From the IMG/VR virus record IMGVR_UViG_3300042544_001590, positions 1 to 64,000 of that record: 64,000 nt of DNA; one strand, 5' to 3'. Positions 7,402 to 64,000 of this stretch are shown piece after piece. The notes below the pieces were generated by a model, which was not told the DNA's origin, did not search any database, and saw only the letters and a list, made by a program, of their open reading frames with translations. Within the stretch, counting starts at the first letter, position 1, and each line of letters opens with the position of its first letter. The translations under genes and the position numbers were made by a program.

Positions 7402-7600
7402 TGAGTGAGAAATATGAAGCGGTAATCGGGGGTTATACCTTTCTGATGAAGGATGACGGGGTGATTGAGGTATGGGCAGGGTTGGATAGCGAATATCCAG
7501 AATCCTTCATATATGTGAAGGATGGGAGCGTTTTAGATCGGAAATCTTTTGAGATGGAGATCATGGATTTTTGCCTTAAAAACTAGAATATAATTGTGGC

Positions 7601-7781
7601 ATGAACGAACGAAGAACTGAAAGAAGAACTCCAGAAAATGAATGACGAAGACCTGTTTTATTTTTTAAGAGAGGTTTTAACTGATCGTGTCATGGAATGG
7701 GCTGAAACCACTACTTATTATAATGAGCCGACATCTAATGCTAAATTAGCGGTAATTAAGCACATTCTGTGTGCTTATTAA
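7601..7781 (+). pseudogene. Small module gene with a +1 frameshift just after the start
   Basis: ATG at the canonical module position gives only 14 aa; removing one base (ATGAACG to ATGACG) opens a ~59-aa ORF ending at the TAA of the next module. Confidence 0.5.
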
Positions 7782-7802
7782 AAACTAGGATACAATCGAC
7801 CC

Positions 7803-8525
7803 ATGACTAAAATTGAATTTTCCGACGAACACCTTCGGGTGATGATGACTGCCTTGGAAGTGTATTCCAGACTGAGGGCTGGACAGATCAGGATCGCCAT
7901 GGATGAGGCATTCCGTGATATGAGCTTGTCTTGGAAAGAATTGGAATCCATTGAAAAATTTGTAAGGGGTATCTTGTATCCAGAACCCGTGGAACTGAAA
8001 TACGATGGACATGGGGGGTATTATGATCAATATGGCCGAACTTACGGAGAAGATGGGGAAATGGATGACACCCAAATGTCTTGGGAGGATAAAGAGCGTT
8101 TGAAGCGTTCTGAATTACATGGTAATTATGGGGTGTGTCACAAAGAGATGATCAAGAGTGGGGGGACATTGGCATACGAAATCTATTCCACGCTGCGTCA
8201 ATATGTCTCTCTGAAAAATAATGATGGATACGAAGCGGTGGGGGTGAATTATCTTGATCCTTTGCAAATCACCGAAGTTCCCCTGCCAAGGATTGAAGGA
8301 TTCACCGCCGAAAAGCGATTCCCCATCAAAGATAAGAAGACTGTGGTGAAACTTGAAAACGCAATGGAATTACATAAGGATTTTTCCAAATGTTGGGAAA
8401 TTGTTGGGGAATATCTTAAAAATAAATACCCAGAATTGGATGACTATTCCCAAGCAAGGATTGAAAGAAAAGATAATCATTACGTGGTGATTGTTAAGGG
8501 AGCTAGAAAGAAAAAAGATGAATAA
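7803..8525 (+). CDS. Hypothetical protein
   Basis: 240 aa; ATG exactly at module +1. Confidence 0.8.
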   Translation: MTKIEFSDEHLRVMMTALEVYSRLRAGQIRIAMDEAFRDMSLSWKELESIEKFVRGILYPEPVELKYDGHGGYYDQYGRTYGEDGEMDDTQMSWEDKERLKRSELHGNYGVCHKEMIKSGGTLAYEIYSTLRQYVSLKNNDGYEAVGVNYLDPLQITEVPLPRIEGFTAEKRFPIKDKKTVVKLENAMELHKDFSKCWEIVGEYLKNKYPELDDYSQARIERKDNHYVVIVKGARKKKDE

Positions 8526-8925
8526 AAGAATTATAATTTTAAGAGGAACCCAAAATTCTGGTAAAAGCACAGTTGCGAAGCTGTTTGGAGAAAATTCAAT
8601 AATCTGCTGTGCTGATGATTACTTCACAGACAATTGGGGTAATTATAATTTTGATCCCAATCTTCTGGGAGTTGCACATAGAATCTGTCGGGAAAAATTC
8701 GTGGATGCTTTAGATGATCCTGATATTGATACCATCGTGGTAGCCAATACAAATGCGACACAGAAGGACTTTCAATTTTATATTGACTCTGCGGAACAAC
8801 ATGGTAATATGGTGTTCTCACTGGTGGTAGAACGCCGACACGATAACCACAACAATCATAACGTGCCACAAGAGGCGATTGATCGTTGTGAACAGAATAT
8901 CAGAAACACATTAAAATTAAAATAA
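8518..8925 (+). CDS. P-loop kinase (AAA_33 / polynucleotide-kinase-like)
   Basis: IIILRGTQNSGKST Walker A, CADDYF, VVANTN, HNVP. Confidence 0.8.
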   Translation: MNKRIIILRGTQNSGKSTVAKLFGENSIICCADDYFTDNWGNYNFDPNLLGVAHRICREKFVDALDDPDIDTIVVANTNATQKDFQFYIDSAEQHGNMVFSLVVERRHDNHNNHNVPQEAIDRCEQNIRNTLKLK

Positions 8926-8926
8926 T

Positions 8927-9598: not shown

Positions 9599-9841
9599 GA
9601 TACAATAAGGGCATGAAATTATATAAAGTTGAGATGACGTTTGAAACAGTGGTATTGGCTGAAAGTAGCCAAGCTGCTGAAAGAGAAGCCCGTTACAACA
9701 TTGGGGAAGAAGACCCGATTGAGTGTTATATATTCGGTATCAGAGCATTGGGTGATCTACCCGATCAATGGGATGGGGATTGCATACCGTGGGGTGGTGG
9801 ACATAATGTGAAACAACATACAATTAAACAAATTTTGGAAA

Positions 9842-11573: not shown

Positions 11574-11587
11574 GTTACAATACGGAT

Positions 11588-14500: not shown

Positions 14501-14622
14501 TTGTGAAAATCACCTTGCGGGGGGATGAATATTGGTATCGTATTACCACAAACAGAAAAGGTGTGCCTGTGTGGGATAACTTTATCTGGCAATCAAATCA
14601 AACGGAGGAAATTAATCTATGA
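11588..14622 (+). CDS. Run of hypothetical proteins (11588-12058, 12080-12673, 12670-12858, ~12863-13237, 13206-13424, ~13421-13939, 13954-14622)
   Basis: Tightly packed + strand ORFs, several starting at module +1 and ending in the next module. Confidence 0.7.
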
Positions 14623-15367: not shown

Positions 15368-16186
15368 ATGAAGAGTATAAAATATCCCGAAAAAGCTGGA
15401 ATTTATAAATTAACCTGTAAAACGAGTGGAAAATTCTATATAGGGAAATCAATAAATATAAGAGATAGAATAAAACGACACGAAAAATCAGCCAAAGACC
15501 TTAAAAATAAATGTCGTATAGTAAAAGCTATAAGAAAATATGGGTGGGACGATTTTGAAGTTGAAATATTGGAAATTTTTGAAGATTTTAATAGAGAATT
15601 TGATGATGCAAAATTATTTTTAATAGAATCTGATTATATAACCAAGCTCAATGCAACTGATGAAAAAGTTGGGTATAATATCTTAACTTGTAATTCTGGT
15701 AAAAACGGGATGAAACATACTGATGAAACAAAGGAAAAACTTAGAAAAGCTAATTTGGGAAAAAAACACAGCGAAGAAACTAAAAAAATGATGTCTGAGA
15801 AATTTTCCGGTGAAAACCATCCGATGTGGGGTAAACATTACACTAAAGAAGCTTTGGTCAAAAAGTCTGGTGAAAATTCATGTTGGTATGGAGTAAAGGG
15901 GGAATCCCACCCTACTTATGGGCGCAAACACACACCAGAAGCTATAAAAATATTAAAAGAAAAAAGACAATTACAAGACACAACACCTTTCAAGAGAAAA
16001 ATAAAACAAATCAATTTAGAAAATGGTGAATGTGTTAAAATATGGGATAGTATTAAAGAGGCTGCTATGTTTTTTGGTGTGAATCCGACTTCCATATCTG
16101 AAGTGTGTAGTAAGAGGAAAAAAGGAAATAGTGTGACAAAAAGATGTAAGGGGTATGGTTGGGAATATTGCGATGTTAAAAACTAG
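15368..16186 (+). CDS. Free-standing GIY-YIG homing endonuclease with NUMOD3 repeats and C-terminal NUMOD1-like HTH
   Basis: AGIYKL...FYIGKS..R...H, GYN, repeated KHT/SEETKxK and GENHPMWGK; AT-rich; TAAATA 6 nt before ATG. Confidence 0.92.
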   Translation: MKSIKYPEKAGIYKLTCKTSGKFYIGKSINIRDRIKRHEKSAKDLKNKCRIVKAIRKYGWDDFEVEILEIFEDFNREFDDAKLFLIESDYITKLNATDEKVGYNILTCNSGKNGMKHTDETKEKLRKANLGKKHSEETKKMMSEKFSGENHPMWGKHYTKEALVKKSGENSCWYGVKGESHPTYGRKHTPEAIKILKEKRQLQDTTPFKRKIKQINLENGECVKIWDSIKEAAMFFGVNPTSISEVCSKRKKGNSVTKRCKGYGWEYCDVKN

Positions 16187-20254: not shown

Positions 20255-20634
20255 TTTAAAAAATAGACTATAATAAGATCATGAATGGATACTTGGGAGA
20301 ATTTGAAGTGGATATGGAAGACACGCCATACAAGGATTATGATAAATCCGATTGGATGGTGGAATATATCCAAATGTATGGAGGTATTGATGGTAGCCAT
20401 CACAAGGATTGGGTGATGGATCAATGCATCCGTATTTGGAGTGGTTCAGAAGTGATTGTTAAGGAAGCTCGCTGGAAAGATGGAGAGCGAGAGTATTCGG
20501 AATTTAGAATCAATGTCGGAGAACCCACCAAAAAATATGAAAAATTGGTGGAGGATACCGAAGAAGAAGGATATGAATGGAATCAAGGAATAGCACCTTA
20601 AAAACTAGAATACGATTATGCCAACAGGATAAAA

Positions 20635-21969
20635 TTATCCAAAATCTGAGTAACCACTAACAAGTGATTTCTCAGATTTCAGACTAAAACAACTCCATCG
20701 ACTAAAATCATAGTCCTTGAAGAGAAACCTTAATTCGTTCAGTTTCTTATTATCTCTCAGATATTCATGAATGCCTTTGTAACCAATATTCTTAGGGTTA
20801 TAGTCCGATAGAATTGAATTCCATCTCTCTTTTATCAGACCCCTATTAATCTTTGGATATAAGACATCCACATCTGAAAATTCTTTACGCTTTTTGATAT
20901 AGCGATTTAAAAACACATGGCAACGGCGAGCAATTTCTAATGCTGCCGCAATGCTGTCGGTTTCCTCTGGATGATCAAGACATCCAACGGTGGAAGAATA
21001 CGCACATATAATCTCTTGGTTTTTGATACCAAGAATGTTAAGACGCTTAATGAGGTTTTGTGAAAATTTTAAACGATTCCAAGAGTTATTAAGGAGTCTA
21101 TTTAGCTTACGTCCTTTATTGTGGTCTTTAGAAGACATTGTAAGCTTCTCAAGACCCACACATTCCACTTTATAATATTTACAGAGATTTGATATGGATT
21201 TGGCAATTTCTACAACCTCGTGATCCTTTTTATTCTTACTATACGTCTCATTCAGCTTGGTAAGATCATAAACACTCTTATGGATGATAGTATCATCATT
21301 GAAATCCCTGATTGTAAATGCGATGTAATTGGGATTTAAATCCAATCCTGTGATTCTATTTTCAATAAATTGGTGTTCTTGTTCCATTAAGACAGATTCA
21401 TCAAAAGTAATATAAATATAATTATTATCTAATTTATAAGTGATCGGGGTGGAATTAAATTCAAAATACGATTGTAACTTTTCAAGCATCTTCCATCTGG
21501 AATTTGAAGTATTTAATTTCAAATTATAATGATCATTTTTAGTGCGTTTGAATATAATTTGTTTATTTATAATATCTAATTTTAATTTTCTATTACCGAG
21601 GGGTTCGTTCCGACCACCATTAAAAAAAGCTGGTCGGCTGTTTTTAATATTATTAAATTCTTCTTTAGTAATTATGCCTTTATTAAAACGTTTCCACTGA
21701 TTAAGTGATCCAAATGTTGTTTTGGTTTGTTTACACTCTTTAGCGGATTTAAAGAGAGCGGAAGCATCTCCAATTTGTGCTGCAAGGATGCTGGCATCAA
21801 CCAAATCATAATTAACATTGTAAGAACTCTTGATTTTTCTGGTGGCGTGGGTGATATCGTGTTTTTCCTTTTTGAAAATATTGAAAGCAATTCTTTTGAT
21901 CTTGTTGCATTCCTTGAGGAATGGTGCAAGATCGGAATCACATTCATATTTGACTTTGAGAGTAGTCAC
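20635..21969 (-). CDS. tnpB: TnpB/Cas12f-like RNA-guided RuvC nuclease, no TnpA
   Basis: RuvC I GLDLNPNYIA, II VGLEKL, III ETDSIAAALEIARR; AYSS motif; no zinc finger; probable GTG start 5 nt after TAAATA. Confidence 0.75.
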   Translation of the reverse strand: MTTLKVKYECDSDLAPFLKECNKIKRIAFNIFKKEKHDITHATRKIKSSYNVNYDLVDASILAAQIGDASALFKSAKECKQTKTTFGSLNQWKRFNKGIITKEEFNNIKNSRPAFFNGGRNEPLGNRKLKLDIINKQIIFKRTKNDHYNLKLNTSNSRWKMLEKLQSYFEFNSTPITYKLDNNYIYITFDESVLMEQEHQFIENRITGLDLNPNYIAFTIRDFNDDTIIHKSVYDLTKLNETYSKNKKDHEVVEIAKSISNLCKYYKVECVGLEKLTMSSKDHNKGRKLNRLLNNSWNRLKFSQNLIKRLNILGIKNQEIICAYSSTVGCLDHPEETDSIAAALEIARRCHVFLNRYIKKRKEFSDVDVLYPKINRGLIKERWNSILSDYNPKNIGYKGIHEYLRDNKKLNELRFLFKDYDFSRWSCFSLKSEKSLVSGYSDFG

Positions 21970-22010
21970 ATAAGTATTTAGTATATAACACGTTATTTTT
22001 TGAAATAGTG

Positions 22011-22038
22011 TTGACATCTTTAAAAACTAGATTACAAT
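22011..22038 (+). promoter_or_regulatory. Module copy with canonical -35: TTGACA-N16-TACAAT
   Basis: Same arrangement at 46175 (TTGACT-N16-TACACT). Confidence 0.75.
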
Positions 22039-22059
22039 GATAGCATAATAAATAAAAAA

Positions 22060-22689
22060 ATGACAGGATATACAGCAGCAGTTCAGGACGGAACAATCAC
22101 GGAATTCAGGGATTACGCACTTCAATGCGCCAGAGCTTTCGGGGCTTGTGTGATGCAACGGGATGACGACCCATCAGAACCTCCAAAAGAACAGGAAGAA
22201 TCGTCATATTATCAGGAAAGGGTTGATGAGACTCTGAAAGAAATCGAAGAACTGAAAAATCTTTCCGATGAAGAATTGGTGGAATCTGAAAAGAACACAA
22301 ATCTGAGAGAAATCGAGAAATGTAAACAACGTATTGAAGATAAAAAAATCGAAAGACTTCGATATGAAGATATGTTGGAGAAGGTGGAAGCTTGGAAATC
22401 CCCGTCTTTCGAACACAATAATTACAAGGAATTCATGATCAATCAATTGAAAGATTCCATTGCATTTGATTGTGGTGGTAGTTATTACGAAGACAATCTC
22501 CTGCAAGCTATTTCCAAATTGGAAAATATGCCAACAGCCAAAGAAATTAGGGAAGAGCGTTTTTCATCCTTGCAAAAGGATTTGAAATATTATCAGAAAA
22601 ATCTAGCAGAAGAGAAGGAACGAGTATCCGGTAGAAACCAATGGATTAGACAGCTTTATGAATCACTTGAAAATGGAAGCAAATCCTAA
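22060..22689 (+). CDS. Conserved phage hypothetical protein
   Basis: TGYTA...CARAFGA..M.RDD N-terminal family pattern, recognised from memory. Confidence 0.7.
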   Translation: MTGYTAAVQDGTITEFRDYALQCARAFGACVMQRDDDPSEPPKEQEESSYYQERVDETLKEIEELKNLSDEELVESEKNTNLREIEKCKQRIEDKKIERLRYEDMLEKVEAWKSPSFEHNNYKEFMINQLKDSIAFDCGGSYYEDNLLQAISKLENMPTAKEIREERFSSLQKDLKYYQKNLAEEKERVSGRNQWIRQLYESLENGSKS

Positions 22690-35073: not shown

Positions 35074-35640
35074 ATGAACTTATATTGTGTACGTCATGGC
35101 CAGTCGGAGGGTAATATTAATCCCGAAGCGTATTACCAAATGCCCGAATGGAAAATCCCTCTTACGGCAGAGGGTAAGAAACAGGCTGAAAACGTTGGTA
35201 AGAATTTGTCGGATATTGATAGTTTTTACATGATTTCCAGTCCATATGTGCGAGCTAGGGAAACAGCAACCATCATCAAAAAACAAATCAAGACAATATA
35301 TTCCTATTATCAAGAATCCCCACTAATCATCGAACGAGCATGGGGCAACCTACGGGATGAAGTGAATCAATTTAAAACAAGGGAAGAGCGCAATCACCTA
35401 TTTGATTTCTATCGTCGCCCAACGGGAGGGGAATCCTTTGCAGATGTTTATCAGAGGGCATTCGTCTTTCTGGAATATCTCAAGAATAATTTCAATGATC
35501 CCAAGGATATCATCATTGTATCCCACGGGGAATTCCTCAAGGTTCTGCTTATGATCATTGATGGGAACACTGTGGAGGAATTCAATGATCTGCCGAATCC
35601 CAAGAATTGTCAGATCATCACAAGAAGAATCAACGAATAA
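35074..35640 (+). CDS. Histidine phosphatase (phosphoglycerate mutase family)
   Basis: RHGQS, SSPYVRARET, GGES, VSHG, N-C-I. Confidence 0.9.
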   Translation: MNLYCVRHGQSEGNINPEAYYQMPEWKIPLTAEGKKQAENVGKNLSDIDSFYMISSPYVRARETATIIKKQIKTIYSYYQESPLIIERAWGNLRDEVNQFKTREERNHLFDFYRRPTGGESFADVYQRAFVFLEYLKNNFNDPKDIIIVSHGEFLKVLLMIIDGNTVEEFNDLPNPKNCQIITRRINE

Positions 35641-44400: not shown

Positions 44401-47400
44401 TTGCACACACTGACTACAACATGAAGACATACAACAACGCGAAGGAACTCTGTTCAGACGATTACAACAACAATTTCTGGAGATTTGGTCGTTCCCTTTA
44501 CAAAATCACGGCATGTGGTCCGTGGAGTCGTTTGGTGCTGACCGAAGATCGCAACGTCTATTACGAATCCAAAGGTGCGAATGATCCAACCCTATTGGAC
44601 GATCCTGATATCATTGGCATTGAAATCGGCAGCATCGTGGAAGGCAGTGATGTGGAGATCGGGCCGGAATTTCTCAAGTTCCCATTCACCGATAAGGAAC
44701 TGTGGGACACGGTGGAGCAAATCAACGAGGAAGCATCCTTCTATTGGAAACGTGACAATGAGGATGATTTCTTAATTGAAATTGATGGCAATGAATACTA
44801 TGTGACTAGCGGATGGGGAATTGAATTTCCTGAAAACATTCCCGACACTGTGAAGACATTCTTTGAGAATTTCCAAGACGATATCATGGAGATTGAGGAT
44901 GGGGATAGCATTGAGATTCAGGATTACAAGGTGACGAAGCTGGACAAAAGTGATTTCATTTTTTAAAAACTAAAATACACTCCTACCATGACCTACACTG
45001 AACGCAAAAACGAATTGGAGCATCGCAACATTGAAAAGCTTTGCTTGAAATATCTCGGTTCTCCCTTGGTGATCGATCCTGATTACGAATTGGAAGCTGA
45101 ACCGCGAGCATACAAGACGGAAGATGATATGTTCTTCTTCGTCCCTCTGCTGGATTCTCCTGTGATGGCTAGGACTTTGTTGGGGGAACACCCGATTCCC
45201 GGACGCTACCACTACGCAATTGAAACCATTCAAGGGGATGGGGGATCGTATTGGGAACCACCTGACTATGATCAGGTGGAGATCGGGCGGGAGGATAGTC
45301 TGGAAAAAGCCATCGCGTTTGCCGCCCATTATCTTCTGGATATCAATCTGAATGGAGAAGGGGAAGGATCGTATTACAGCATGGAATCCACACTTGAAAA
45401 GGAATTCCCCTCGCATTGGAACGAATAAAAACTAGATCATAATAACACCATGGAAGAGAAAATCTACAAGCTAATTAAACATTACATCTTCAATCCTCAT
45501 GTCACCGCCGCAAGCGTTTCATTGGATTTGCTGAATCTGGTGGAATGCCAGAATGTTGAACTTATCCGTTCAATCATCCACGGGGTGGAAGGTTACGACA
45601 GTTACGACAAAGCGTTGAAGGAACTTGATCGTATGATTGAATGCTATAAAAAATAGGATACACTCACACCACATGGAAAATCAATACGAAAATAACTCAT
45701 CAGTAATATTAAAAGGCTTAACCCGTAAAGTGGATGATAATACCTATGAAGCGTTTGGTAAAAATGTCGCATCAATAACCACAAATCATGTTATGGTAAC
45801 TTTTAATTTACATAAAGTTCGACGGGAAAAGCTTTGTCATTTTAGGGGCAGTGCGATCTTAGATTCTTTTTAAAAACTAGAACACAATAACACCATGGCT
45901 AAACAATACTACATGTTCATTCCGCTGGATATCGACAAGAATAAGAAAACCCGATTCGTTGTTGAGACGGATGGAATTCCAACTGGTAATCTATTCTCTG
46001 GTAGGGTGGTTGCAAGGAACAAGAAAGCTTACTGGTATCTGGGAGACACTTCGGATCAATGGGCGAATCCCATTGCTGATATGAAGAACGGTAGCAAGCC
46101 ATCATTCCTTCCCATCAATTGGGATGAAGTGGATGAGAAATTTGACGAGCATTGCATTGAAGGGTAAAAACGAATTGACTTTTTTAAAAACTAGACTACA
46201 CTTTGGTCGTAACGAAAAACAACAACACACACTACTACAATGGCACACGAAATTGAAATTGGAACTGATCGGGTAATCACCTATGGCGCACGGGCATGGC
46301 ACTTGCTTGATGAAAATCACCAGACTCCTCTTACCAAAGAGATTCTGAATCCCCTGTTCATTCCCTATCTGGAAGGACAAGCTAACGTCAACATTGATGG
46401 TGTTGAAGTCCCGCTTGAAGGATGGAAAACCATTGTTGCGGATATCCGTAACATCGAGGACATTGAGGGGGATTTCCGTCCTGTTCATGTCGCATCCGAC
46501 AAGTATGAAATCCTTCAAAATGAATTGCTTTTTGATGCTCTTCAGGATGCTCTGGATAGTATCAATTACAAGATCGTATCGGCGGGAACTCTCTCTGGTC
46601 TGAAGAACTTCTTCGTATCCGTCGAATTTGATGGAGAGTCGAATATCAATCTTCCTGATGGAAGTGAGTGTAAGGCATTCTTCTCTCTCTTCACTTCCCA
46701 TGATGGCACGAAGAACGCGAACTATTATGATACAACGCATAGGACTGTGTGTGCAAACACGCTTCGCTCTTCCTTTGAAGCAAAGGGTAATCAGGGATTC
46801 CGTATCTCTCATACCAAGAACGCATCCATCCGTATCAGCAACATGGCGGAAATTGTTAATAACACTCTGCTTGGTCGTCGCCAATTTGAAGAGAAGATGG
46901 CGGAACTTTACAGCGTTGAATGTGATCTTTCCAAGGCGGAACGCTTCGTTGCGGGATACCTTGCTGACAAGACCAAAACCGAAGAGAAGCTTTCCACACG
47001 TTCTCTGAATCAGATGGCGGAAATCGTCTCTCTGGCATGGAACGGTAGCGGTAATCGTGGTGGGAACATGTTCTACCTTGCCCAAGGTGCAACGGAATTC
47101 TGGACTAGGGGTAATGGCACGGGCGGATCAAACAAAGACCTTGGACGTAAGGCATACTCCGCTGAATTCGGGCTGGGTATGGAGAACAAGAGAAACTTCG
47201 TATCCGCTCTTGTCAATCCTGTGGAGCGTGAGAAGCTTATCAAGCGGGGTGATCTGGTTCTTACTGCTGGATGATATCAAACAGCTTCCGATTAATCCCG
47301 CTCGGACGGGAAAAATGCTGAGACGGAAGGAACGGGAATAGCATTACGCCCGACCACTTTTAAAAACTAGATTAAGATTTGGATATGAAAAATATCTCTA

Positions 47401-56400: not shown

Positions 56401-57598
56401 GAAAATTCATGATAAGCTGATTTTCCGAGTGGGGGTGGAAGAGGTTCATAGTCGATTCCAATTTGATCTTTACGATGCCCTGTGCCGAGCTTGCAACCCT
56501 TAAAAACTAGACCATAATTACGCCATGACCTACCAAGAGAAAGACAATATCCGGGAAGCAATCGAGTGGGATGGTTTCCAATGCATCATGCTGGGAACCG
56601 TATCCAAAGCGGGTATCCAAAGGCGCATGGATGGGAGCTTGGTGAGCGTATCAAATCCAAGGCAACCGGATACCAAGAGACTGGAAACCTTTGCCATCAC
56701 CGGACAATGGTTGTTTAAAAACTAAAACATAATAAGACCATGACGAAACACAAGCTGCCAACGATCAAGGAAATTGCAAAGCTTCTCATGCATTGCAAAA
56801 AATATATCCATGTTGATTCCCGTGCCTTTGACGACGACGATACGCCTTCCATGCAAATCACAATTGGAATCAACACGGAAAGCGGGGAATGGGGATATCA
56901 AACGGGGGACAATAGCTTCACGGGGGGAGCATATCTTTATCCAACGTGGGGAGTGGGATATCTCTTTCGGAATTCCAATTGTCGGGAAGTTGCCAAGGAA
57001 ATTCTGGCGGATGCCGAAAGCTGCCTGTATTAAAAACTAAACCATAATAAAGCCATGCCTTACTTACTACTGATTGAATGGGGAAATTGTGATAAGACTT
57101 ACGAATCTTTCCAATTCTTAAAAGATGCTAAACACGCCTTTGAATCCCATAAACATGAGGAGAATGTGGAATTTATGGAATTGGTGATCATTGGGGAGAA
57201 TGTGGAAAGCTGGTCAAATCCCGATTGTTCCCCTGAATCAGACTTTTAAAAACTAAACCATAATAAAGCCATGACAAACGAACAAATCGAATTTTCCCGA
57301 AGGAACGGAATTTGAATGTTTCTGATAAAAACTAGATTAAGATTTAACCATGACCTACAAAGCAATCTCAAATCCCCTGTGGAAGCTCAAGGATGAATTT
57401 GCCCATCTACTGCTTCCCAAGCACGTTTCCTTTCATGGTGCAATGCCTTCCCCTGCGGAAGCTTATGAAGTGATTCACAAGCCATCCATGGAAATCAATG
57501 ATCGGGGAAGAATCACCTATTCCAATTACTTCTACGGGAAGATTCTGGAAACGATGGAGGAAGCCCAAGCGGTGGCGGAAAAGCTGAATAACCGATAA
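41424..57598 (+). CDS. Array of roughly 60 small hypothetical genes, most with their own module (named members listed separately)
   Basis: ATG 24 nt after module T (e.g. 44988, 47831, 49072, 52229, 53017, 56740, 57350); stops usually in the next module. Confidence 0.75.
41939..42193 (+). CDS. Small Cys/His-rich repeat protein
   Basis: Three repeats of CxxC...G.GC..SP...H.(H). Confidence 0.7.
   Translation: MSQCRYCQSQSYGLGCPASPWGRHEHFNNEKKCEFCGGTGYGSGCTLSPVKKHRHGSGKNKCRWCGNTAMGMGCIHSPSGFHEK
43689..43761 (+). ncRNA. Structured RNA or 5' leader starting at module +1
   Basis: GTTCTCTC/GAGAGGAC closing AGGGG/CCCCT and TCTCC/GGAGA helices. Confidence 0.5.
46240..47274 (+). CDS. DUF932-family protein
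   Basis: MAHEIE..AWH, YEILQN, SAGTL, TSHDG, RTVCANTL, HTKN. Confidence 0.85.
   Translation: MAHEIEIGTDRVITYGARAWHLLDENHQTPLTKEILNPLFIPYLEGQANVNIDGVEVPLEGWKTIVADIRNIEDIEGDFRPVHVASDKYEILQNELLFDALQDALDSINYKIVSAGTLSGLKNFFVSVEFDGESNINLPDGSECKAFFSLFTSHDGTKNANYYDTTHRTVCANTLRSSFEAKGNQGFRISHTKNASIRISNMAEIVNNTLLGRRQFEEKMAELYSVECDLSKAERFVAGYLADKTKTEEKLSTRSLNQMAEIVSLAWNGSGNRGGNMFYLAQGATEFWTRGNGTGGSNKDLGRKAYSAEFGLGMENKRNFVSALVNPVEREKLIKRGDLVLTAG
47285..47356 (+). ncRNA. Compact pseudoknotted element ending in ACCA
   Basis: CTTCCG/CGGAAG, TCCCG/CGGGA, AATGCT/AGCATT, CGGG/CCCG, then ACCA and a T run. Confidence 0.45.
50189..50674 (+). CDS. SprT-like zinc metalloprotease
   Basis: TAGQA, TVPHEMAH, PHGREW, C-terminal CGC...CTCC. 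Confidence 0.85.
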   Translation: MTDTKQRIHKTIQHFAEVARIKGYEFPKCVIDYSLKGATAGQAFRRSHKMRFNLALAERHMDEFLSSTVPHEMAHILQFKHYPHSKPHGREWDHFCRVLTGETMPRCHSYDVTGIERTRKVKKYLFACGCRQHTVSKTIVNRIMEGKTYTCTCCKGKIKAV

Positions 57599-57619
57599 AA
57601 ACTAGCGCACAATCATAGC

Positions 57620-57688
57620 ATGAACGAAACAATGACCGAAGCGGATATCCAAGACATGATTGACTATCACAACGGGATCGTTAAATGA
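57620..57688 (+). CDS. 22-aa peptide MNETMTEADIQDMIDYHNGIVK
   Basis: ATG at module +1; paralog at 58993 differs synonymously. Confidence 0.55.
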   Translation: MNETMTEADIQDMIDYHNGIVK

Positions 57689-57694
57689 TACTTT

Positions 57695-57769
57695 GGTGCG
57701 GTAGTCCAGCGGCAGGAGACAAATGACTTAAAATCATTACAGGGTCGGTTCGAATCCGACTCGCCACTC
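57695..57769 (+). tRNA. tRNA-Leu(UAA), short variable loop, defective acceptor (possible pseudo-tRNA)
   Basis: AATGA-CTTAAAA-TCATT, GTCGG-TTCGAAT-CCGAC; acceptor needs a bulge; no CCA. Confidence 0.65.
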
Positions 57770-57790
57770 TTTATAAAACTAAATGAAAAT

Positions 57791-57868
57791 TGTCCGGTAG
57801 CTCAAAGCGGTGAGAGCACTTGCCTTATAAGTGAGAGGTTGCGGGATCGACACCCGCCCGGACTACCA
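57791..57868 (+). tRNA. tRNA-Ile(UAU)
   Basis: Cloverleaf, loop CTTATAA, encoded CCA, T-loop ATCGACA, U1-U72 mismatch. Confidence 0.85.
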
Positions 57869-57900
57869 TTTTTTAAAAACTAAAATAAGATAACACCACG

Positions 57901-58557
57901 ATGACAACAATTGAATTTTGCAGCAAATACTCTCTTAGTGAAATGTGTGAGGAAGGACGGAATTTCGCTTTGAGTCTTGAAACAATGTCTCAAGTTTGGG
58001 AAAATTGTAGAAATCCGAGTTGGCTTTTCTGGATTCTCGACAAATGCAAGCCGCTGGATAAGGAACAATCCGTGAGATTGTCCATTGCATTTGCGGAAAC
58101 TTGTCTTATTAATGTTCCCGATGGAGAAACTCGCCCCAAACTTGCGATTGAAGCCTCAAAAGCATGGCTTGATAATCCATGCGAAGAAACAGAGTTAGCA
58201 GCAACATCAGCAGCAGAGTCAGCATCAGTAGCAGCATCAGCAGCATGGTCAGCACGGTCAGCAGCAGAGTCAGCAGCACGGTCAGCAGCATGGTCAGCAT
58301 GGTCAGCACGGTCAGCAGCACGGTCAGCAGCAGAGTCAGCAGCATGGTCAGCAGCAGAGTCAGCAGCATGGTCAGCAGAGTCAGCAGCAGAGTCAGCAGC
58401 ACGGTCAGCAGCACGGTCAGCAGCATGGTCAGCACGGTCAGCACGGTCAGCAGCAGAGTCAGCAGCATGGTCAGCAGCAGAGTCAGCAGCACGGTCAGCA
58501 GCACGGTCATCGCAATGCAATACGATACGGGAAATGATTTCAAACCCCTTCGGTTAA
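57901..58557 (+). CDS. Protein with low-complexity SA(A)W/R/E repeat tract
   Basis: GTCAGCA(GCA) 9/12-bp units ~58195-58510; N-terminal RP..AIEA..AWL domain. Confidence 0.75.
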   Translation: MTTIEFCSKYSLSEMCEEGRNFALSLETMSQVWENCRNPSWLFWILDKCKPLDKEQSVRLSIAFAETCLINVPDGETRPKLAIEASKAWLDNPCEETELAATSAAESASVAASAAWSARSAAESAARSAAWSAWSARSAARSAAESAAWSAAESAAWSAESAAESAARSAARSAAWSARSARSAAESAAWSAAESAARSAARSSQCNTIREMISNPFG

Positions 58558-58992
58558 AAACTAGAATAAGATAACACCATGACATTAAACGAGATCAAAA
58601 CAGCGGTTCGGGACGGTAAAAAAGTGTGCTGGGCAACCCCGATCTACGAAGTGATCAATCCGATCAAATCACCAACTTTGGATGCCAACGAAGAGCAATG
58701 GCTGATTCGGTGCAAGGCAAACGGTTCTTGCATTGGTTTGACACACCAAGACAATATCACGATGAACGGCGAGGAGAGCGAATTCTTCATCGCATAAAAA
58801 CTAGCCTATAATCACACCATGCAAGAAACAATGTCAATGAGAGTCCGGTCTGATAGGTGGGAATGGATTATGAAATGGTGTGAGGAAAACGGAAAGGATT
58901 GGAGGATTGAGGGAGATTGCCAAGAAGCAAGGATGGCATGGATCAAGTTCATCCAAGAAACCAAACCATAAAAACTAGCCTATAATCATCCC

Positions 58993-59061
58993 ATGCCTGA
59001 CAATATGTGCGAATACGATATCCAAGACATGATTGACTATCACAACGGGATTGTTAAGTAG
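58993..59061 (+). CDS. 22-aa peptide MPDNMCEYDIQDMIDYHNGIVK
   Basis: ATG at module +1; paralog of 57620. Confidence 0.55.
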   Translation: MPDNMCEYDIQDMIDYHNGIVK

Positions 59062-59070
59062 AATTTAAAT

Positions 59071-59147
59071 GGTTGCGTAGCCCAACCGCTAGAGGCCACA
59101 GACTTAAAATCTGTTCAGTATGGGTTGGAATCCCATCGCAACTACCA
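59071..59147 (+). tRNA. tRNA-Leu(UAA), short variable loop, C19-G56 swap
   Basis: GGTTGCG/CGCAACT-A-CCA; ACAGA-CTTAAAA-TCTGT; T-loop TTGGAAT. Confidence 0.85.
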
Positions 59148-59173
59148 TTTTTTAAAAACTAAAACACAATAAC

Positions 59174-59464: not shown

Positions 59465-59626
59465 AACATGAAACAACTTGCAACTCTCGCCTTCTATGCG
59501 AAATACGCCGGATGGCAATCCTATCACAAGTCCATGCTTCCCCAAGTCAAAGCCCTAACACGCAAGGGATTTCTGGAAATGAATGAGCATGGGCAAGCGC
59601 GGTTCACGGGAAAGTGTCAAGATTAA
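59222..59626 (+). CDS. Lar-family restriction-alleviation-like protein fused in frame to the resident gene (ATG 59468)
   Basis: LLPCPFCGSEA...VEC....C...WNAR. Confidence 0.65.
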   Translation: MSDTEKLAEATDSGLLQPRLVRLLPCPFCGSEARIGQGDGWPGETVVECSNDENCRAQMSCIWGEKNETELWNARANPQPNNMKQLATLAFYAKYAGWQSYHKSMLPQVKALTRKGFLEMNEHGQARFTGKCQD

Positions 59627-59642
59627 AAAACTAGCCTAGAAT

Positions 59643-59717
59643 GCGCTTGTAGCTCAGTGGTTAGAGCGAGCCTCTCATAAAGGCTGGGTCGATGGTTCAA
59701 TCCCATCCGAGCGCACC
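59643..59717 (+). tRNA. tRNA with CAU anticodon (elongator Met or Ile2)
   Basis: GCGCTTG/CGAGCGC, AGCCT-CTCATAA-AGGCT, ends ACC. Confidence 0.88.
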
Positions 59718-59737
59718 TTTAAAAACTAGCATAGAAT

Positions 59738-59814
59738 GGATGCGTAGCTCAACTGGATAGAGCAATTCCCTTCTAAGGAATAGGTTGTGGGTTCAAATCC
59801 CGCCGCGTCCACCA
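59738..59814 (+). tRNA. tRNA-Arg(UCU)
   Basis: GGATGCG/CGCGTCC-A-CCA, ATTCC-CTTCTAA-GGAAT. Confidence 0.92.
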
Positions 59815-59838
59815 TAAAAACTAAACCATAATCACACC

Positions 59839-62800
59839 ATGACCCACAAGGAACACCTGCTCAAAACACAATTCGGATTCATTGCCACCAAGGAAGATGA
59901 GGAAAAGCTTATCGCAGAGGATCGCTTCACACCCGTTCTGGTGCGCTGTGGCAATGGAAGGTTCCGTTGCGCGGTGCAGGATTTGGCACACTTCGTCAAG
60001 GTGATCAATGCCAGCAAAGAGGACTATGTGAGGGACGCATCCGTGACCCTATAAAAACTAAACCATAATAACACCATGTTCGACAAACCAATTGCAACCC
60101 GCCCTTACTCATCCCATCCTGATGATTCCTATCTCCAAGTGGTTCTCCACAAGAACTTCAAGGGGGAATATGTCACCCATATCCAGAATCTCCATACAGG
60201 CGGATTCGTGCATGGCCATTACTTTGGCAAGGACACGGATGCGCTGGAAAAGGCAACCCAAGACTTCAAGAACCGATAAAAACTAAACCATAATCACACC
60301 ATGACCAAGAAATACCTGATAATCAAGCTGGAAGCCAAGGAAAGCCAAATTCCCGATGGTTACAATATGACAACCCGGACGGAATATTTCGGGGTTACAA
60401 CCGGATATCCCTTTCCCCATGACACTCTGGAAGAGGCGGAAGAGGAATTGGCACGGAATATTTACAAGTTTGAGCAATACACGATCATTCCGGTCTATAC
60501 CTACGAATAAAAACTAGATTAAGATAACACCATGACCGAAACACAAGCAAGGCAAGCTCTGGATGCGTGGACAATCAAGACCTATCTGGATTGGGTCAAT
60601 AATTACCTGACCATTGAAAAGATGGCAAGCGATTACAATCTCTCCCCAAAAGGAATGAAAGCAATCCTTGAAAAAGGCAAGGAACTTTATGAAGGATAAA
60701 AAACTAGAATAAGATAAATCCATGCATTACACAATCAATATCTCCCTCAATGGGTATCACTTATTTGCAACAGCGGATCATAGCTTGTGCGATACCCAAG
60801 AATACATCAGATGCTTCGCCATCTTGAAAGCGAAATTTCCTGAAAGCGAAGGATATAAAGTGGATGGAACCCTATGGAAGACAATCGGTAACTCGGTGAA
60901 TGATTCCGGTGATAAAAACTAGAATAAGATAAAGCCATGCAATACAACCTACTGATTGATTGGGGAAACGGAGAGAAAAGCTTTCAGGAATTTGACAACC
61001 TGATCCTAGCTCAAAAAGCAATGGAAAACTCCAAGGACAATCCCGAAATCGAATTTATCATTCTGGTAAAGAGCGAAATGCTGGGATTCTGGTCAAACCC
61101 ATGCAGCGGAGAAGAGGACTGATAAAAACTAGCGTAAGATCAGGACATGAAACAATTCAACCTATTCTGGAAGTTCTCAGGTATTAAGAACTACGACCCC
61201 CACCAAACCATCACCGCAAGGAATCTCCCGGAAGCCTTGGAAATAGCTGCAAACGACCATGGTTTCCTGATTAGGGGAGAAACCCTAAAACGCAACGGCA
61301 ACCGTAGAATTGAATTTTGGGGATATGCCGGGGAAGGAACGATGAAAGTCCCCGCACCGATTATCCAAGGGGTGATTGCCAATGCTTAAAAACTAGCGTA
61401 AGATCAGGACATGACAATCAACGGAATCCAAATTAAGACAACCCTTTCCAACACCAAAAAACCGGATTGGAGCAGGGGCAATCATAACCATTACAAGGTG
61501 CGGATTTCCAAGGGAAGGAATAGCGTATCCTTTGATTACTTTGACAGCATCCACAATACGCAAAATAATGAGGAAGCGGACATGAAAGATATCCTTTTCT
61601 GCTTTGCATCCGATGTGAGCAACGGGCGGGAGGAATTCGATGATTCCATGATGACTCCCAAGCAATACCGAGAATGCAAGCGTGTGGCCAATGCTGCGGA
61701 AAGGATGGGCATTTCCAACGAAACACTGGCGGAATGGTGGCAGCTTTAAAACAAAGGACGCGGGAATCAGTGTGACAAAATGACGCACCTCCACCTAAGT
61801 CTCTGATAGTGTGACAAAATGACGCACTCAAGGTGCGACAAAATGACGCACTGTGACAAAATGACGCACTTTAGGAATAGAAGGATACGAAAGGATAGGG
61901 GAAATAACTTTTAAAAACTAGCGTAAGATTTCAGCATGACGAAATTACTCGACAAAGAACACGTGAAAGCAATGGTAAAAGCTCTGGAAAGCGCGGGCTT
62001 GCCTTTGGAAAAGGATTGGCAAAGCGGGACTGTTCGGGCATACATCAACGGCAAGGAAATCTTCGCCGCTCTGGAGAAGGGCAAGAACCAGCCTTGGATT
62101 GTGCGCCATGTTGATGATCTGTTCGCATAATGTTCCTAATCAGAATGTTCCTTGATATGACATAATCGACAAAGCCAAGTTATATCAAGAGGTTTGGAAT
62201 AATCTTTATGATGCATTTCCTCGCCTATCTCACCACATATACAATTTTCGCGCAATATCTTACCACGTTTTAAATATACATTTGCTGTTGATCGTGCATT
62301 AGCTTTCAATCGCTGAATATCACTAAGTTCTGAATGTTTGGTTCTATTGATTCGCATCCATTCAGCACGGCATGATTTACACCAACGTTGATTATTAACC
62401 CGCTCATTCACTTTACATTTATTACAATATGTCATAATAATACTTAGAATATTGTTCCACATTTGTATAGTGGAACAAGTGATGTTTAAAAACTAGCCTA
62501 GACTGATCACATGAAGGAACTGCCACCGTGCCACAAAGATTCCCCCCTCCATGATAAATGGCTTGTCATTGTCGCTCAAATGGAGGATGAGGGATGCGAT
62601 ACATCCGATGCCCAATCCATAGCCGATATTGAGGTGTTTAAAAACTAGATTAAGATTTAGCTACCAATACAACGCCGGAGCCGCTGCGGAGCGGAGTCCC
62701 CCGCAAAGGGACATATAAAAAAGCTTTTGTCGTTCGATTCCCGGATGCATACGGGATAGAGCAAGAGGACTAGCTATCCTTGGACAAGACGAAAGCGGAG

Positions 62801-64000
62801 GGTTCGAAACCTTCCTCGGGCTTCCTTTTCTTAAAAACTAAACCAGAATAACACCATGACGAGACAATATACAAACCGACTGCTGGAAATGATCGAAGAT
62901 GGTCTGCTTGACAAGGACAACGTGATCATGGCTTGTGTCAAATACATGTCGGAGGACGATGTGGAGGACATGATGAAATGCAACGAATTTCTGGAGGACG
63001 AAGAAGAGGAGGATGAGGACGAATAAAAACTAGCGTAAGATAGCCTCACCATGAAACGATACGCCATAAGATCAAAACAAAAGGAAATAGGATATATCAA
63101 ATTTACAGTTCCCACCATTGAAGTATTACATTTCAATTCTCCTTTCTTTCTTGGATCGTGGTGTGCTGACAATGGAACACTGTGGACATGTTTGGATGAT
63201 GGGAAAAACATTTTTGAGAATGAGAATGAAGCCAAGGAAAGATTGGCCGAAATCATCAAGGAATTGTTCGCTTAAAAACTAGACCAGAATAACACCATGA
63301 TAATCACATACACCGCAAGATACGCAGATGGTGAAAAAGTCACGTTCACGGGAAAATTCGATGACCTGAAAGACTTTGGGAATTTCGCTCACCGTGAGAG
63401 CAAAAGGCCGAATTACAATGGTGATATGTTCATCATCATTAGCATCGTTTAAAAACTAGCCTAAGATTATCGCACCATGAAACAACTCATCCTTGACACC
63501 CTCGCCGCGTTCTTCCTGTTCGCGTTCACTCCCATCGTCCTGTTCATCCTGATCGGATAACCTTTATAAAAACTAGCGTAAGCTCGTAGCACCATGAAAC
63601 TGAAAATAACAAGCACCGCACCAGTCGCAGTCGAAACCTATGTTGAGGGTAATATTGTCCTCGGGCATTTCGAGTACAACGAGGGTGATTCCGCCCTTGG
63701 GGTCAATCCCCACTTTGTCCTTGTCGATGAAGTGTCGGATGACTTCCCAATCCTTTGGGAAGGGCAGGAAGTGACCATTCACAACGGGTGGTTCATCTTC
63801 GATGACGTTCACTTCGGAGAAGTGAAATTCAAGTTCGCCGGATATTAAACCAACCCCGAAAGGGGTTCAATCCCCCTTATAAAAACTAGCCTAGACTGAT
63901 CTCGTAACCAACACCAACCAACACCATGACCAACAAACAAATCATCGCAAAATTCGTGCAAGGCGCAACCAAGGGCAAGAACAGCCTGAAAAGCATGTTC
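59839..64000 (+). CDS. Array of very small module-headed hypothetical genes (59839, 60076, 60301, 60532, 60722, 60937, 61147, 61411, 61936, 62511, 62856, 63051, 63297, 63477, 63594, 63926 partial)
   Basis: Each start follows a module, mostly at the fixed distance. Confidence 0.7.
61771..61869 (+). repeat. Four 18-bp direct repeats TG(T/C)GACAAAATGACGCAC in a non-coding gap
   Basis: Copies at 61771, 61810, 61834, 61852. Confidence 0.92.
62136..62435 (-). CDS. Small HNH endonuclease-like protein
   Basis: CNKC..CKSC, then CICG...HHKDYSKPLDITWLCRLCHIKEH; TAAGTA 5 nt before ATG. Confidence 0.8.
   Translation of the reverse strand: MTYCNKCKVNERVNNQRWCKSCRAEWMRINRTKHSELSDIQRLKANARSTANVYLKRGKILRENCICGEIGEEMHHKDYSKPLDITWLCRLCHIKEHSD
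62674..62825 (+). ncRNA. Unknown ~150-nt RNA with tRNA-like T arm and acceptor-like closure
   Basis: GCCGGAG/CTCGGGC, GAGGG-TTCGAAA-CCTTC, GCTTTTGTC/GACGAAAGC, GTCCC/GGGAC, TCCCG/CGGGA; follows module at 62639. Confidence 0.6.

Follow-up and report, generated by a model that had tools for sequence, protein, structure and literature searches.

How does a T4-like phage come to place one near-identical 24-bp unit, consisting of a stop codon, a promoter and a start codon, in front of more than 100 unrelated small genes? The window analyzed here comprises the first 64 kb of a 207-kb contig from a lake metagenome. The arrangement points to an undescribed way of steering the host RNA polymerase and to a genome that appears to be expressed largely or wholly without mRNA leaders.

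Structure and distribution of the module

The exact 9-mer TAAAAACTA occurs 94 times in the window, 93 of them on the + strand, whereas shuffled sequences give 0.65 copies (maximum 4). The full module reads wTAAAAACTA-N3-TAnAAT-N5-Y-A(TG). The module array described in the initial annotation was therefore confirmed, with some corrections. One copy lies on the - strand, although only + strand copies had been reported. Five further one-off variants share the same geometry. The R after the 9-mer is not universal, as C occurs in relatives. The array does not stop at the window edge but runs on for 14 more copies, and nine more copies are located elsewhere in the genome. The density of the module rises from about 1 per 1.2 kb (7.5–40 kb) to about 1 per 270–320 bp (50–64 kb). 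The coordinates of the main features are listed in Table 1.

Table 1. Modules and associated features in the 64-kb window.
Coordinates	Strand	Feature	Details
7577..63903	+	Module array	93 exact copies (7577 to 63880) and 5 one-off variants (20257, 38556, 45647, 59624, 60697), all co-oriented with the genes; continues to about contig position 67,600
7577..7603	+	First module	9-mer 7577-7585; -10 hexamer TATAAT 7589-7594; predicted start and ATG at 7601
20257..20283	+	One-mismatch variant	TAAAAAATA-GAC-TATAAT-N6-ATG
22011..22062	+	Hybrid promoter	-35 TTGACA 22011-22016; 9-mer 22021-22029; -10 TACAAT 22033-22038; predicted start 22045; followed by late-type TAAATA 22049-22054, N5 before the ATG at 22060 of a 209-aa protein (phrog_8905)
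35220..35228	-	Only - strand copy of the 9-mer	Inside a + strand ORF; no hexamer/ATG geometry seen; probably not functional
46175..46242	+	Hybrid promoter	-35 TTGACT 46175-46180; 9-mer 46185-46193; -10 TACACT 46197-46202; predicted start 46209; 31-nt leader to the ATG at 46240 of a DUF932 protein
57695..57868	+	tRNA-Leu(TAA) and tRNA-Ile(TAT)	Inside the array; tRNA-Ile preceded by a degenerate module (TAAAACTAAATGAAAAT)
59071..59147	+	Second tRNA-Leu(TAA)	Followed at once by the module at 59153
59624..59642	+	A6-tract variant	TAAAAAACTA-GCC-TAGAAT; abuts the first base of tRNA-Met (59643)
59720..59737	+	Module before tRNA-Arg	Hexamer TAGAAT (59732-59737) abuts the first base of tRNA-Arg (59738); predicted start (59744) would fall inside the tRNA
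59815..59841	+	Typical right-hand module	TAAAAACTAAACCATAATCACACC-ATG; starts directly after the 3' end of tRNA-Arg
60697..60724	+	A6-tract variant	TAAAAAACTA-GAA-TAAGAT-N6-ATG

A sequence logo was built from the 93 + strand copies, with the T of the 9-mer counted as position 0. Position -1 is T or A, position 9 is G (68) or A (25), position 13 is A in 93/93, position 17 is T in 92/93, position 23 is C (74) or T (16), and position 24 is A in 85 copies. The ATG lies exactly at +24 in 70 copies and at +26/27 in 10, while the rest have longer leaders or precede tRNA or non-coding DNA. The upstream ORF ends inside the 9-mer in 67/93 cases (72%), 43 at TAA (positions 0–2) and 24 at TAR (positions 7–9), so the stop codon assigned to the module in the initial annotation also holds.

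The module was found at 435 distinct sites in relatives, many of which share no DNA similarity with the window, and it is kept in such contigs of 33–46% GC. At orthologous sites in relatives of 60–92% identity, positions 0–9, 12, 13 and 17 are kept in 100% of cases, while the flanks drop to 31–70%. The 82 module-led ORFs contain only one paralogous pair, indicating that the invariance is due to selection and not to duplication. About 26 of the 435 copies of the 9-mer have no hexamer and are often followed by G-runs or paired in inverted orientation, so the 9-mer has at least one use outside promoters.

Promoter geometry and genomic context

The hexamer at positions 12–17 shows the sigma-70 -10 profile (T-A-n-A/G-A/C-T), with A2 and T6 (positions 13 and 17) invariant or nearly so. 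The two -35 hexamers noted in the initial annotation are present, each with a 16-bp spacer (Table 1). Among the 435 distinct sites, TTGAC[AT] is found at offset -10..-5 in 12 sites, giving a spacer of exactly 16 bp, and at most twice at any other offset. Y at position 23 and R at position 24 are kept in 71/76 and 76/76 of sites whose ATG is displaced to +27, and in 50/60 and 51/60 of sites with no nearby ATG. Shine-Dalgarno-like words were identified upstream of 25% of genes without the module, compared to 21% at random positions, so no Shine-Dalgarno signal is evident. A TANNNT placed 6–7 bp before an ORF is an established signature of leaderless genes (PMC12340547). No excess of terminators was detected inside the array, and a strong intrinsic terminator stands at its end, near 67.4 kb.

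Two other promoter classes in the same genome show the same spacing to the start codon. Canonical promoters (TTGACA-N16/17-TAnnnT-N6-ATG) were identified, as were T4-type late promoters (TAAATA-N5-ATG), with 8 of the latter in one 21-kb locus against 0.79 in shuffles. In both classes the start codon sits where T4 and sigma-70 geometry puts +1. The predicted leaderless layout is not special to this module or region but is a genome-wide habit of this phage.

The phage is a deep-branching member of the T4 superfamily, with homologues of gp23, gp20, gp21, gp13, gp15, gp32, gp41, gp43, gp44, UvsX and the late sigma gp55. The gp55 homologue matches PDB 7D7C chain F with an E value of 3.6e-13, and no gp55 paralogue was found. 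No RNA polymerase family hit turned up in about 203 of the 207 kb. Among about 170 ORFs of the array, no sigma, MotA, AsiA, HTH or other DNA-binding regulator was identified, and the genes behind the hybrid promoters gave no lead to a reader of the 9-mer. A search for transcripts found no RNA run holding the sequence, and the one related run gave only scraps.

Interpretation of the module

The initial annotation proposed a phage-specific promoter class in which a spacer element replaces the -35 and drives leaderless mRNAs, by analogy with sigma appropriation in T4. This interpretation is partly supported. Every sequence-level test performed supports that the module is a promoter, that the 9-mer stands where the -35 is missing, and that the mRNAs are leaderless, and the T4 analogy is apt because the phage is a distant T4-superfamily member with a gp55 homologue. 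A phage-specific factor, however, is inference. The anatomy of the module, its statistics, its conservation and the T4-type genome with gp55 rest on the sequence analysis itself, whereas the transcription start site, leaderless translation and the identity of the reader of the 9-mer are inferred.

We consider the following model more likely than not. Each module would be a compact intergenic unit whose first bases supply the stop codon of the preceding gene and whose hexamer is a -10 element for a sigma-70-type holoenzyme. Transcription by the host's multisubunit RNA polymerase would start 7 nt downstream of the hexamer, at the A of position 24. In most copies that A is the A of the ATG, so the mRNA would have no leader and no Shine-Dalgarno sequence, and 70S-type leaderless initiation would be needed. 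In about a fifth of copies the ATG would follow a 2–3 nt leader, most often ACC. The invariant TAAAAACTA would lie in the spacer, at -24 to -16, taking the place of the missing -35 and TGn elements as the specificity determinant. Its most likely reader, by inference, is a phage-specified protein that works with the host enzyme, either an activator or sigma-remodelling factor or an unrecognised sigma-like subunit. A few promoters with a canonical -35, some with and some without the 9-mer, would allow expression by the unmodified holoenzyme. In this view, transcripts from successive promoters would be nested and end together at the terminator near 67.4 kb. The model does not explain three tRNA genes, as tRNA-Met, tRNA-Arg and tRNA-Ile begin immediately after the hexamer and would be truncated by a start at position 24.

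A possible but less likely alternative is that the unmodified host holoenzyme reads the 9-mer directly, as a host-specific or simply very strong spacer or extended -10 element. The array would then be an immediate-early class that needs no phage factor, as T4 early promoters do. With the host unidentified, this reading cannot be excluded. The genes served are the many small ORFs typical of T4-type early regions, no phage regulator was found in the array, and T4 early promoters also carry extra conserved positions beyond the host consensus (PMC2988021). Some bacteria, such as Campylobacter and Helicobacter, replace the -35 by A/T-rich spacer signals. However, nine invariant bases in more than 400 sites is far tighter than any known host-read spacer element, and no sigma-70 or core domain is known to make base-specific contacts across -24 to -16. 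The canonical -35 promoters of the phage show no trace of the 9-mer in their spacers, so the holoenzyme does not need it when a -35 is present. A scan of 185,579 species genomes, limited to its first 120 hits, returned only single, chance-level hits.

It is unlikely that the module is mainly a recombination or mobility junction that shuffles gene cassettes, like the promoter-early stem-loop cassettes of T4-type phages, with incidental promoter activity. Unrelated ORFs do carry near-identical extended modules in local runs, for example ...AACCATAATAACACC-ATG, tRNA genes are joined exactly at the module edge, and gene content between modules differs widely among relatives while the module is constant. 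However, no stem-loop or terminator component was found, and a junction function does not require the -10 profile, the Y/R or the strict distance to the ATG. Shuffling at promoters is a consequence that can coexist with the promoter function.

An RNA-level role is more doubtful still. In read-through transcripts, the A-rich UAAAAACUA plus the fixed 21-nt gap would serve termination-reinitiation, act as a ribosome standby site in a host without Shine-Dalgarno pairing, or mark an endonuclease cut that creates 5'-AUG ends. This would fit the stop codon inside the 9-mer at a fixed distance from the next ATG, the lack of an evident Shine-Dalgarno signal together with A-rich upstream regions, and the lack of an excess of internal terminators, with which every internal gene would also be present on read-through RNA. 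It does not explain the conserved A13/T17 in a -10 profile, the exactly placed TTGAC[AT], the conserved Y/R when the ATG is shifted, the modules in front of tRNAs or non-coding stretches, or the same spacing to ATG in canonical and late promoters. It may still be a secondary use of the same bases.

A promoter for a phage-encoded RNA polymerase, single-subunit (T7/N4 type) or multisubunit (phiKZ/AR9 type), is very unlikely: although near-invariance over about 18 bp is typical of phage-polymerase promoters, AR9 and phiKZ virion-polymerase promoters share the geometry of a conserved AT-rich element followed by 6 N and the start (PMC5312081), and two of the three tRNAs that start right after the hexamer begin with G, as a T7-type +1 would, it is opposed by the absence of polymerase hits in about 203 of the 207 kb, a T4-type lineage with gp55 that uses the host enzyme, the -35 hexamers at 16 bp with the sigma-type A2/T6 pattern, and a pyrimidine at position 18 in 47/93 copies, which does not fit a T7-type start.

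Comparison with known promoter systems

Phage T4 middle promoters, which combine a MotA box with a sigma-70 -10 and depend on sigma appropriation by AsiA/MotA (PMC2988021, PMC6755090), also belong to a T4-superfamily phage using the host polymerase, lack a -35, keep an excellent sigma-70-type -10 and carry a 9-bp phage-specific element upstream, in dozens of copies per genome. Here, the element is TAAAAACTA and not (a/t)(a/t)(a/t)TGCTTtA, and it lies 3 bp, not 12 +/- 1 bp, from the -10, so it is centred near -20 and not -30. It is invariant, whereas MotA boxes tolerate many changes. No MotA or AsiA homologue was found among the about 170 ORFs of the array, the more than 110 copies serve the small early-type ORFs, and the transcripts are predicted to be leaderless.

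Leaderless genes with a -10 adjacent to the ORF are found in Deinococcus-Thermus (PMC12340547) and mycobacteria (PMC4633059). The large Thermus phage phiYS40 reportedly has leaderless middle and late mRNAs (Sevostyanova et al. 2007, cited in PMC12340547). These systems share a TANNNT 6–7 bp before the start codon with nearly invariant T1, A2 and T6, no Shine-Dalgarno sequence and a dispensable -35. They have no invariant 9-mer next to the -10, whereas here all three promoter classes of a T4-type phage show the layout and the stop codon of the preceding gene is built into the promoter.

The virion-RNA-polymerase early promoters of phiKZ-like jumbo phages (AR9: AAATATATATTAT-(6N)-G; PMC5312081, PMC8244752) likewise occur in a jumbo phage and consist of a long, highly conserved AT-rich element followed by 6 N and the start site, with dozens of copies in front of early genes. 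Those phages encode their own split beta/beta' polymerases and have 26–491-nt leaders, while in the part of this genome searched no polymerase gene was found, a subset of sites has sigma-70 -35 boxes, and the predicted leaders are 0–3 nt.

T4 early promoters and promoter-early stem-loop cassettes (PMC2988021; reported by Arbiol et al. 2010) also provide one strong promoter per small ORF in plastic early regions of T4-type genomes, with conserved positions beyond the host consensus, and are likely sites of cassette shuffling. T4 early promoters are UP/-35/TGn/-10 promoters with leaders, Shine-Dalgarno sequences and an adjoining stem-loop, whereas these modules have no -35, no TGn, no stem-loop and, as predicted, no leader.

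Phage sigma factors that read a single extended element include phiEco32 gp36 (AATGTA centred at -11.5; PMC12276001) and T4 gp55 (TATAAATA). In these systems a phage protein redirects the host core enzyme to a short, highly conserved phage-specific element without a classical -35 consensus, as may be the case here. In the module, however, the -10 keeps the housekeeping TAnAAT profile and the specific element lies upstream of the -10, not in it. The only sigma-like gene found is the gp55 homologue, which matches the separate TAAATA late class.

Architecture and conservation of the module

The 9-mer TAAAAACTA occurs 94 times in the 64-kb window, whereas dinucleotide-preserving shuffles give 0.65 copies with a maximum of 4. 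Of these copies, 93 are on the + strand and one is on the - strand. Alignment of the 93 + copies gives the module w-TAAAAACTA-R-A-n-Y-A-n-R-M-T-N5-Y-A-T-G. Counting the T of the 9-mer as position 0, position 13 is A in 93/93 copies, position 17 is T in 92/93, position 23 is C or T in 90/93, and position 24 is A in 85/93. The ATG lies exactly at +24 in 70 copies and at +26/27 in 10. The ORF upstream ends inside the 9-mer in 67 of 93 cases, at TAA (positions 0-2) in 43 and at TAR (positions 7-9) in 24. Module density rises from about one per 1.2 kb on the left to about one per 270-320 bp on the right. Only five one-off variants with the same geometry exist in the window. The array of stop, promoter and start modules described in the initial annotation is therefore confirmed, with two small corrections. 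One copy is on the minus strand, although the copies seen in the initial annotation were all on the + strand, and the array continues past the window.

The parent contig (IMG/VR 3300042544_001590; JGI Ga0453230_0000007) is 207,489 bp long and was obtained from a lake-water metagenome. The window is its first 64 kb. We followed this contig and a near-identical 167,851-bp sister contig to about 203.7 kb. The + strand array goes on for 14 more copies and ends near 67.4 kb at a strong intrinsic terminator. The rest of the genome is that of a distant member of the T4 superfamily. A set of head, neck and tail proteins was identified, including gp23, the gp21 protease, the gp20 portal, gp13, gp15, a gp3-like tube terminator, and gp6-like, gp10 and wedge proteins. 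Replication and repair proteins include gp32, the gp41 helicase, the gp43 polymerase, the gp44 clamp loader, UvsX and RNA ligases 1 and 2. Ribonucleotide reductase, ThyX, three Mom-like proteins and many sugar-modifying enzymes are also encoded. A 149-aa ORF next to the recombination genes matches the T4 late sigma factor gp55 (E = 3.6e-13 to PDB 7D7C chain F), and has no paralogue in the genome. No RNA polymerase family was found among the called genes or the large ORFs across about 203 of 207 kb.

A megablast search found no near relative among cultured phages. By protein matches, the closest cultured relatives are Caulobacter phage Cr30 and Sinorhizobium phage phiN3, with 34-39% identity, whereas gp23 is only about 33% identical to any cultured T4-like phage, so the host could not be inferred. 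Neither Cr30 nor phiN3 has the 9-mer, and phiN3 early regions carry conventional UP/TTGAC/CTAT promoters with leaders. A partial pattern scan of species-representative genomes gave only single chance hits.

The module is under selection and is not a product of duplication. The 82 module-led ORFs of 40 aa or more include only one paralogous pair. A pattern scan of IMG/VR brought in 120 stretches, and together with loci from one further protein look-up, 56 fetched loci carry three or more copies each. These come from many contigs with 33-46% GC, several of which share no detectable nucleotide similarity with the window. Over all fetched relatives there are 435 distinct sites, 409 of which have both A13 and T17. 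The ATG is at +24 in 262, at +27 in 76 and at +26 in 11. At orthologous sites in relatives of 60-92% identity (13 alignments, 9 modules), positions 0-9, 12, 13 and 17 are kept in every alignment, while the immediately flanking positions fall to 31-70%.

Predicted promoter geometry

Four independent features point to a sigma-70-type promoter whose +1 is position 24. First, the hexamer at positions 12-17 has the classical -10 profile, with its two flipped-out bases (A at -11, T at -7) invariant or nearly so. Second, TTGAC[AT] occurs at offset -10 to -5 in 12 distinct sites and at most twice at any other offset in the 30 nt upstream, although more than 95% of sites have no -35. The 12 sites include the two window sites named in the initial annotation and a third at contig position 71,820. 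This fixes a 16-bp spacer to the hexamer at positions 12-17 and rules out the overlapping hexamer at positions 7-12 as the -10, for which the spacer would be 11 bp. Third, the pyrimidine/purine pair at positions 23/24 is kept when it is not part of the start codon. In the 76 sites with ATG at +27, which have the leaders ACC, ACA and ATC, position 23 is Y in 71 and position 24 is R in all 76. In the 60 sites with no nearby ATG, the counts are 50 and 51.

Fourth, the same phage places two other promoter types at the equivalent distance from start codons. Canonical TTGACA-N16/17-TAnnnT-N5-7-ATG promoters without the 9-mer were found in 10 distinct cases outside the array, including ThyX and the first gene of the minus-strand operon. 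T4-late-type TAAATA-N5-ATG promoters were found in 27 distinct cases, with 8 in one 21-kb locus against 0.79 in shuffles. In T4 the late element ends 5 nt before +1, so the A of the ATG falls on the predicted +1 here too. The module itself does not fit a TATAAATA-type late element, whereas this separate class does.

A TANNNT placed 6-7 bp before an ORF is the accepted signature of leaderless genes in Deinococcus-Thermus (PMC12340547), and about a quarter of transcripts are leaderless in mycobacteria (PMC4633059). Consistent with this, no Shine-Dalgarno signal exists in this phage. Shine-Dalgarno-like words occur upstream of 25% of genes without a module, against 21% at random positions. Genes without a module are instead mostly joined by overlapping or abutting stop and start codons in A-rich context, of the ATGA or TAATG type, with gaps of -8, -4, -1 and +1 nt. 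No RNA run containing the DNA was found, and aligning the one related run with 54-60 kb gave nine short fragments and no 5' ends.

Some observations do not fit this geometry. The tRNA-Ile, tRNA-Met and tRNA-Arg genes begin at the base right after the -10-like hexamer of a module, which is degenerate in two of the three cases, and a start at position 24 would therefore cut into them. They may be matured from read-through RNA, or these junctions may be scars of cassette exchange at module edges. Several tRNAs are also followed at once by the next module. A search with Rfam at relaxed threshold found no undetected tRNA-like genes after modules that lack a gene. In addition, about 26 distinct copies of the 9-mer lack the hexamer. 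Several are followed by G-runs at the end of the array, and in some relatives two 9-mers in inverted orientation flank about 25 nt of G-rich DNA. This suggests that the 9-mer is a protein-binding site in its own right.

Proposed mechanism and alternative explanations

We propose that the module is a -35-less, TGn-less promoter for the host multisubunit polymerase. The anatomy of the module, its counts and its conservation were observed directly, while the transcription start, the leaderless translation and the reader of the 9-mer are inferred. The initial annotation had read the module as a phage-specific promoter class giving leaderless mRNAs, with the A-tract element replacing the -35, and this interpretation is partly supported. 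Positions 9-11 are GAA, AAC, GCG and similar, never TGn. By E. coli rules such a promoter would be very weak, and in this view the invariant 9-mer at -24 to -16 must supply the missing binding energy or specificity. The 9-mer is far more strictly conserved than any host-read spacer feature, and the phage's own -35-containing promoters show no trace of it. We therefore consider a phage-specified reader the most likely solution, either an activator or sigma-remodelling protein that touches the spacer, or an unrecognised sigma-like subunit. The few promoters with a real -35, some with the 9-mer and some without, could then be the ones usable by the unmodified holoenzyme, although this is also inference. 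Inside the array there is no excess of terminators. Terminator-like sites number 25, against 19.4 +/- 4.9 in shuffles, and none is associated with modules. Transcripts from successive promoters should therefore be nested and co-terminal, each gene being first on its own leaderless RNA. The 9-mer also supplies stop codons in two of the three frames, which makes the intergenic unit only 24 bp long.

No candidate reader was identified. Pfam and PHROG scans of the array ORFs gave no transcription factor, and about 170 ORFs from 0-68 kb have no sigma, MotA, AsiA or HTH-regulator hit, although highly diverged analogues cannot be excluded. The genes behind the three hybrid promoters, which carry both a -35 and the 9-mer, encode a widely distributed 209-aa protein (phrog_8905), a DUF932 protein, and a 122-aa plus 150-aa pair. 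Scans of these genes and look-ups in a protein atlas also gave no lead. A CtrA-box or UP-element reading of the 9-mer was rejected because the spacing and sequence do not fit. Full-text literature searches for the 9-mer in connection with phages, promoters and leaderless expression found nothing relevant.

Direct reading of the 9-mer by the host holoenzyme, which would make the array an immediate-early class, is the main alternative, but we consider it unlikely. A primary role as a recombination junction is still less likely. It is compatible with the local runs of near-identical extended modules and with the tRNA junctions, but does not explain the promoter-like constraints. The module also lacks the terminator-like stem-loop that is joined to the early promoter in the mobile cassettes of T4-type phages. 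An RNA-level role (re-initiation, ribosome standby or processing) is very unlikely as the main function, since it cannot explain the -10 profile, the -35 spacing or the displaced Y/R, but it may still be a secondary use. A phage-encoded polymerase is the least likely, given the gene inventory and the sigma-type features. Here, the hexamer is followed by 6 N and then A, a geometry that fits the phiKZ type, while position 18 is a pyrimidine in 47/93 copies, which argues against a T7-type start right after the hexamer.

The nearest functional analogue is the T4 middle promoter, which has a host -10 and a 9-bp phage element that replaces the -35 (PMC2988021). The T4 element is the MotA box (a/t)(a/t)(a/t)TGCTTtA, 12 +/- 1 bp upstream of the -10, whereas the element here has a different sequence and lies 3 bp from the -10. 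It is also invariant rather than tolerant of change, and no MotA or AsiA homologue was detected among the ORFs scanned. Leaderless transcripts are produced from -35-less promoters in Thermus phage phiYS40. The layout of a conserved element, 6 N and a start recalls the virion-polymerase promoters of AR9 and phiKZ, which however have long leaders and their own polymerases (PMC5312081, PMC8244752). Phage-specific promoter classes are already known, and the unusual aspects here are the position and invariance of the specificity element and the apparently genome-wide leaderless design in a T4-type phage.

Known ways of redirecting bacterial RNA polymerase act at the -35/-30 region (MotA/AsiA), at the -10 (gp55, gp36) or through the flap. 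It is possible, though tentative, that the 9-mer is read by a so far unknown phage protein that docks on the promoter spacer of a host sigma-holoenzyme. No activator, sigma domain or core element is known to make base-specific contacts at -24 to -16, so this would be a new mode of promoter recognition or sigma appropriation, coupled to a 207-kb T4-type genome in which early-type, canonical and late genes all appear to be expressed as leaderless mRNAs. Such an element, used more than 110 times per genome and conserved across a diverse family of uncultured lake phages, would add a new recognition position and probably a new factor. The system also gives a natural and very regular test bed for leaderless translation, as more than 260 distinct sites carry the ATG exactly at the predicted +1, about 75 carry a 3-nt leader, and T4-type late promoters are placed in the same way. 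Standard gene callers and RBS models will mis-handle such genomes. The 24-bp stop-promoter-start unit is an unusually compact expression part.

Coordinates and additional genomic features

Locations of the module array and of other features in the window, the contig and the fetched loci (L numbers denote individual fetched loci)
Feature	Location	Strand	Description
Array of 9-mer copies	window 7577-63880	+	93 copies
Single 9-mer copy	window 35220	-
Late-type promoters	window 22049-22062, 41928, 43769, 4435 (- strand); L289, L288, L260, L334 (many)		(C)TAAATA-N5-ATG before gp21, gp22, gp13, the probable sheath, tube and terminase genes, and the CCA-adding enzyme
gp55 homologue	L293:6833-7279
Canonical promoters without the 9-mer	contig 79,709 and 70,887 (- strand; L127, L121); L289:15745, 17962, 14771		TTGACA-N16/17-TAnnnT-N6-ATG, laid out for leaderless starts
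tRNA genes abutting a hexamer	window 57791, 59643, 59738
Duplicated cassette	window 57596-57769 and 58969-59147		Module, 22-aa ORF (shared C-terminus ...DIQDMIDYHNGIVK) and tRNA-Leu(TAA)
End of the array	L121:6980-7290 (contig about 67.4-67.7 kb)		Hairpin-plus-T7 terminator, GTTAGATATGGCATA-type repeats, G-runs, 9-mer with G-rich DNA, AT-rich stretch
Tandem repeat	window 1-241		Perfect 57-bp repeat, 4.2 copies, inside the first ORF
Repeat array	window 58190-58509		12-nt and 123-nt repeats (CAGCAG/CAGAGT...) inside the 218-aa ORF at 57901-58557
Large minus-strand ORF	window 20635-22017	-	460 aa, no family hit
Homing-endonuclease genes	window 15368-16186; L292:8180-8641; L295:15559-16521		GIY-YIG/NUMOD3, SegE-like, LAGLIDADG
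Mom/DUF723-type and sugar-related genes	L284, L288, L293-L295, L289, L291, L314		Three Mom/DUF723-type proteins; more than ten sugar-nucleotide and glycosyltransferase genes

At the end of the array, the strong terminator is followed in turn by palindromic repeats, G-runs, a 9-mer with G-rich DNA where a hexamer would be, and then an AT-rich stretch. The 9-mer-plus-G-run recurs in relatives, some of which have two 9-mers in inverted orientation (loci L042, L103 and L015). It may be a regulatory site, an origin or a packaging site. The tandem repeat at the contig start differs in copy number in another assembly (L126), and the sister contig ends at the equivalent point. This is probably where assemblies of a circularly permuted genome break.

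The Mom/DUF723-type proteins and the sugar-nucleotide and glycosyltransferase genes suggest hypermodified DNA, which could affect how the 9-mer is read. Homing-endonuclease genes are scattered through the genome, as in T4. The repeat array in the 218-aa ORF encodes a low-complexity Gln/Ser/His-rich protein. The 460-aa ORF is the only large minus-strand ORF inside the + array, and diverges from the hybrid -35-plus-9-mer promoter at 22011.
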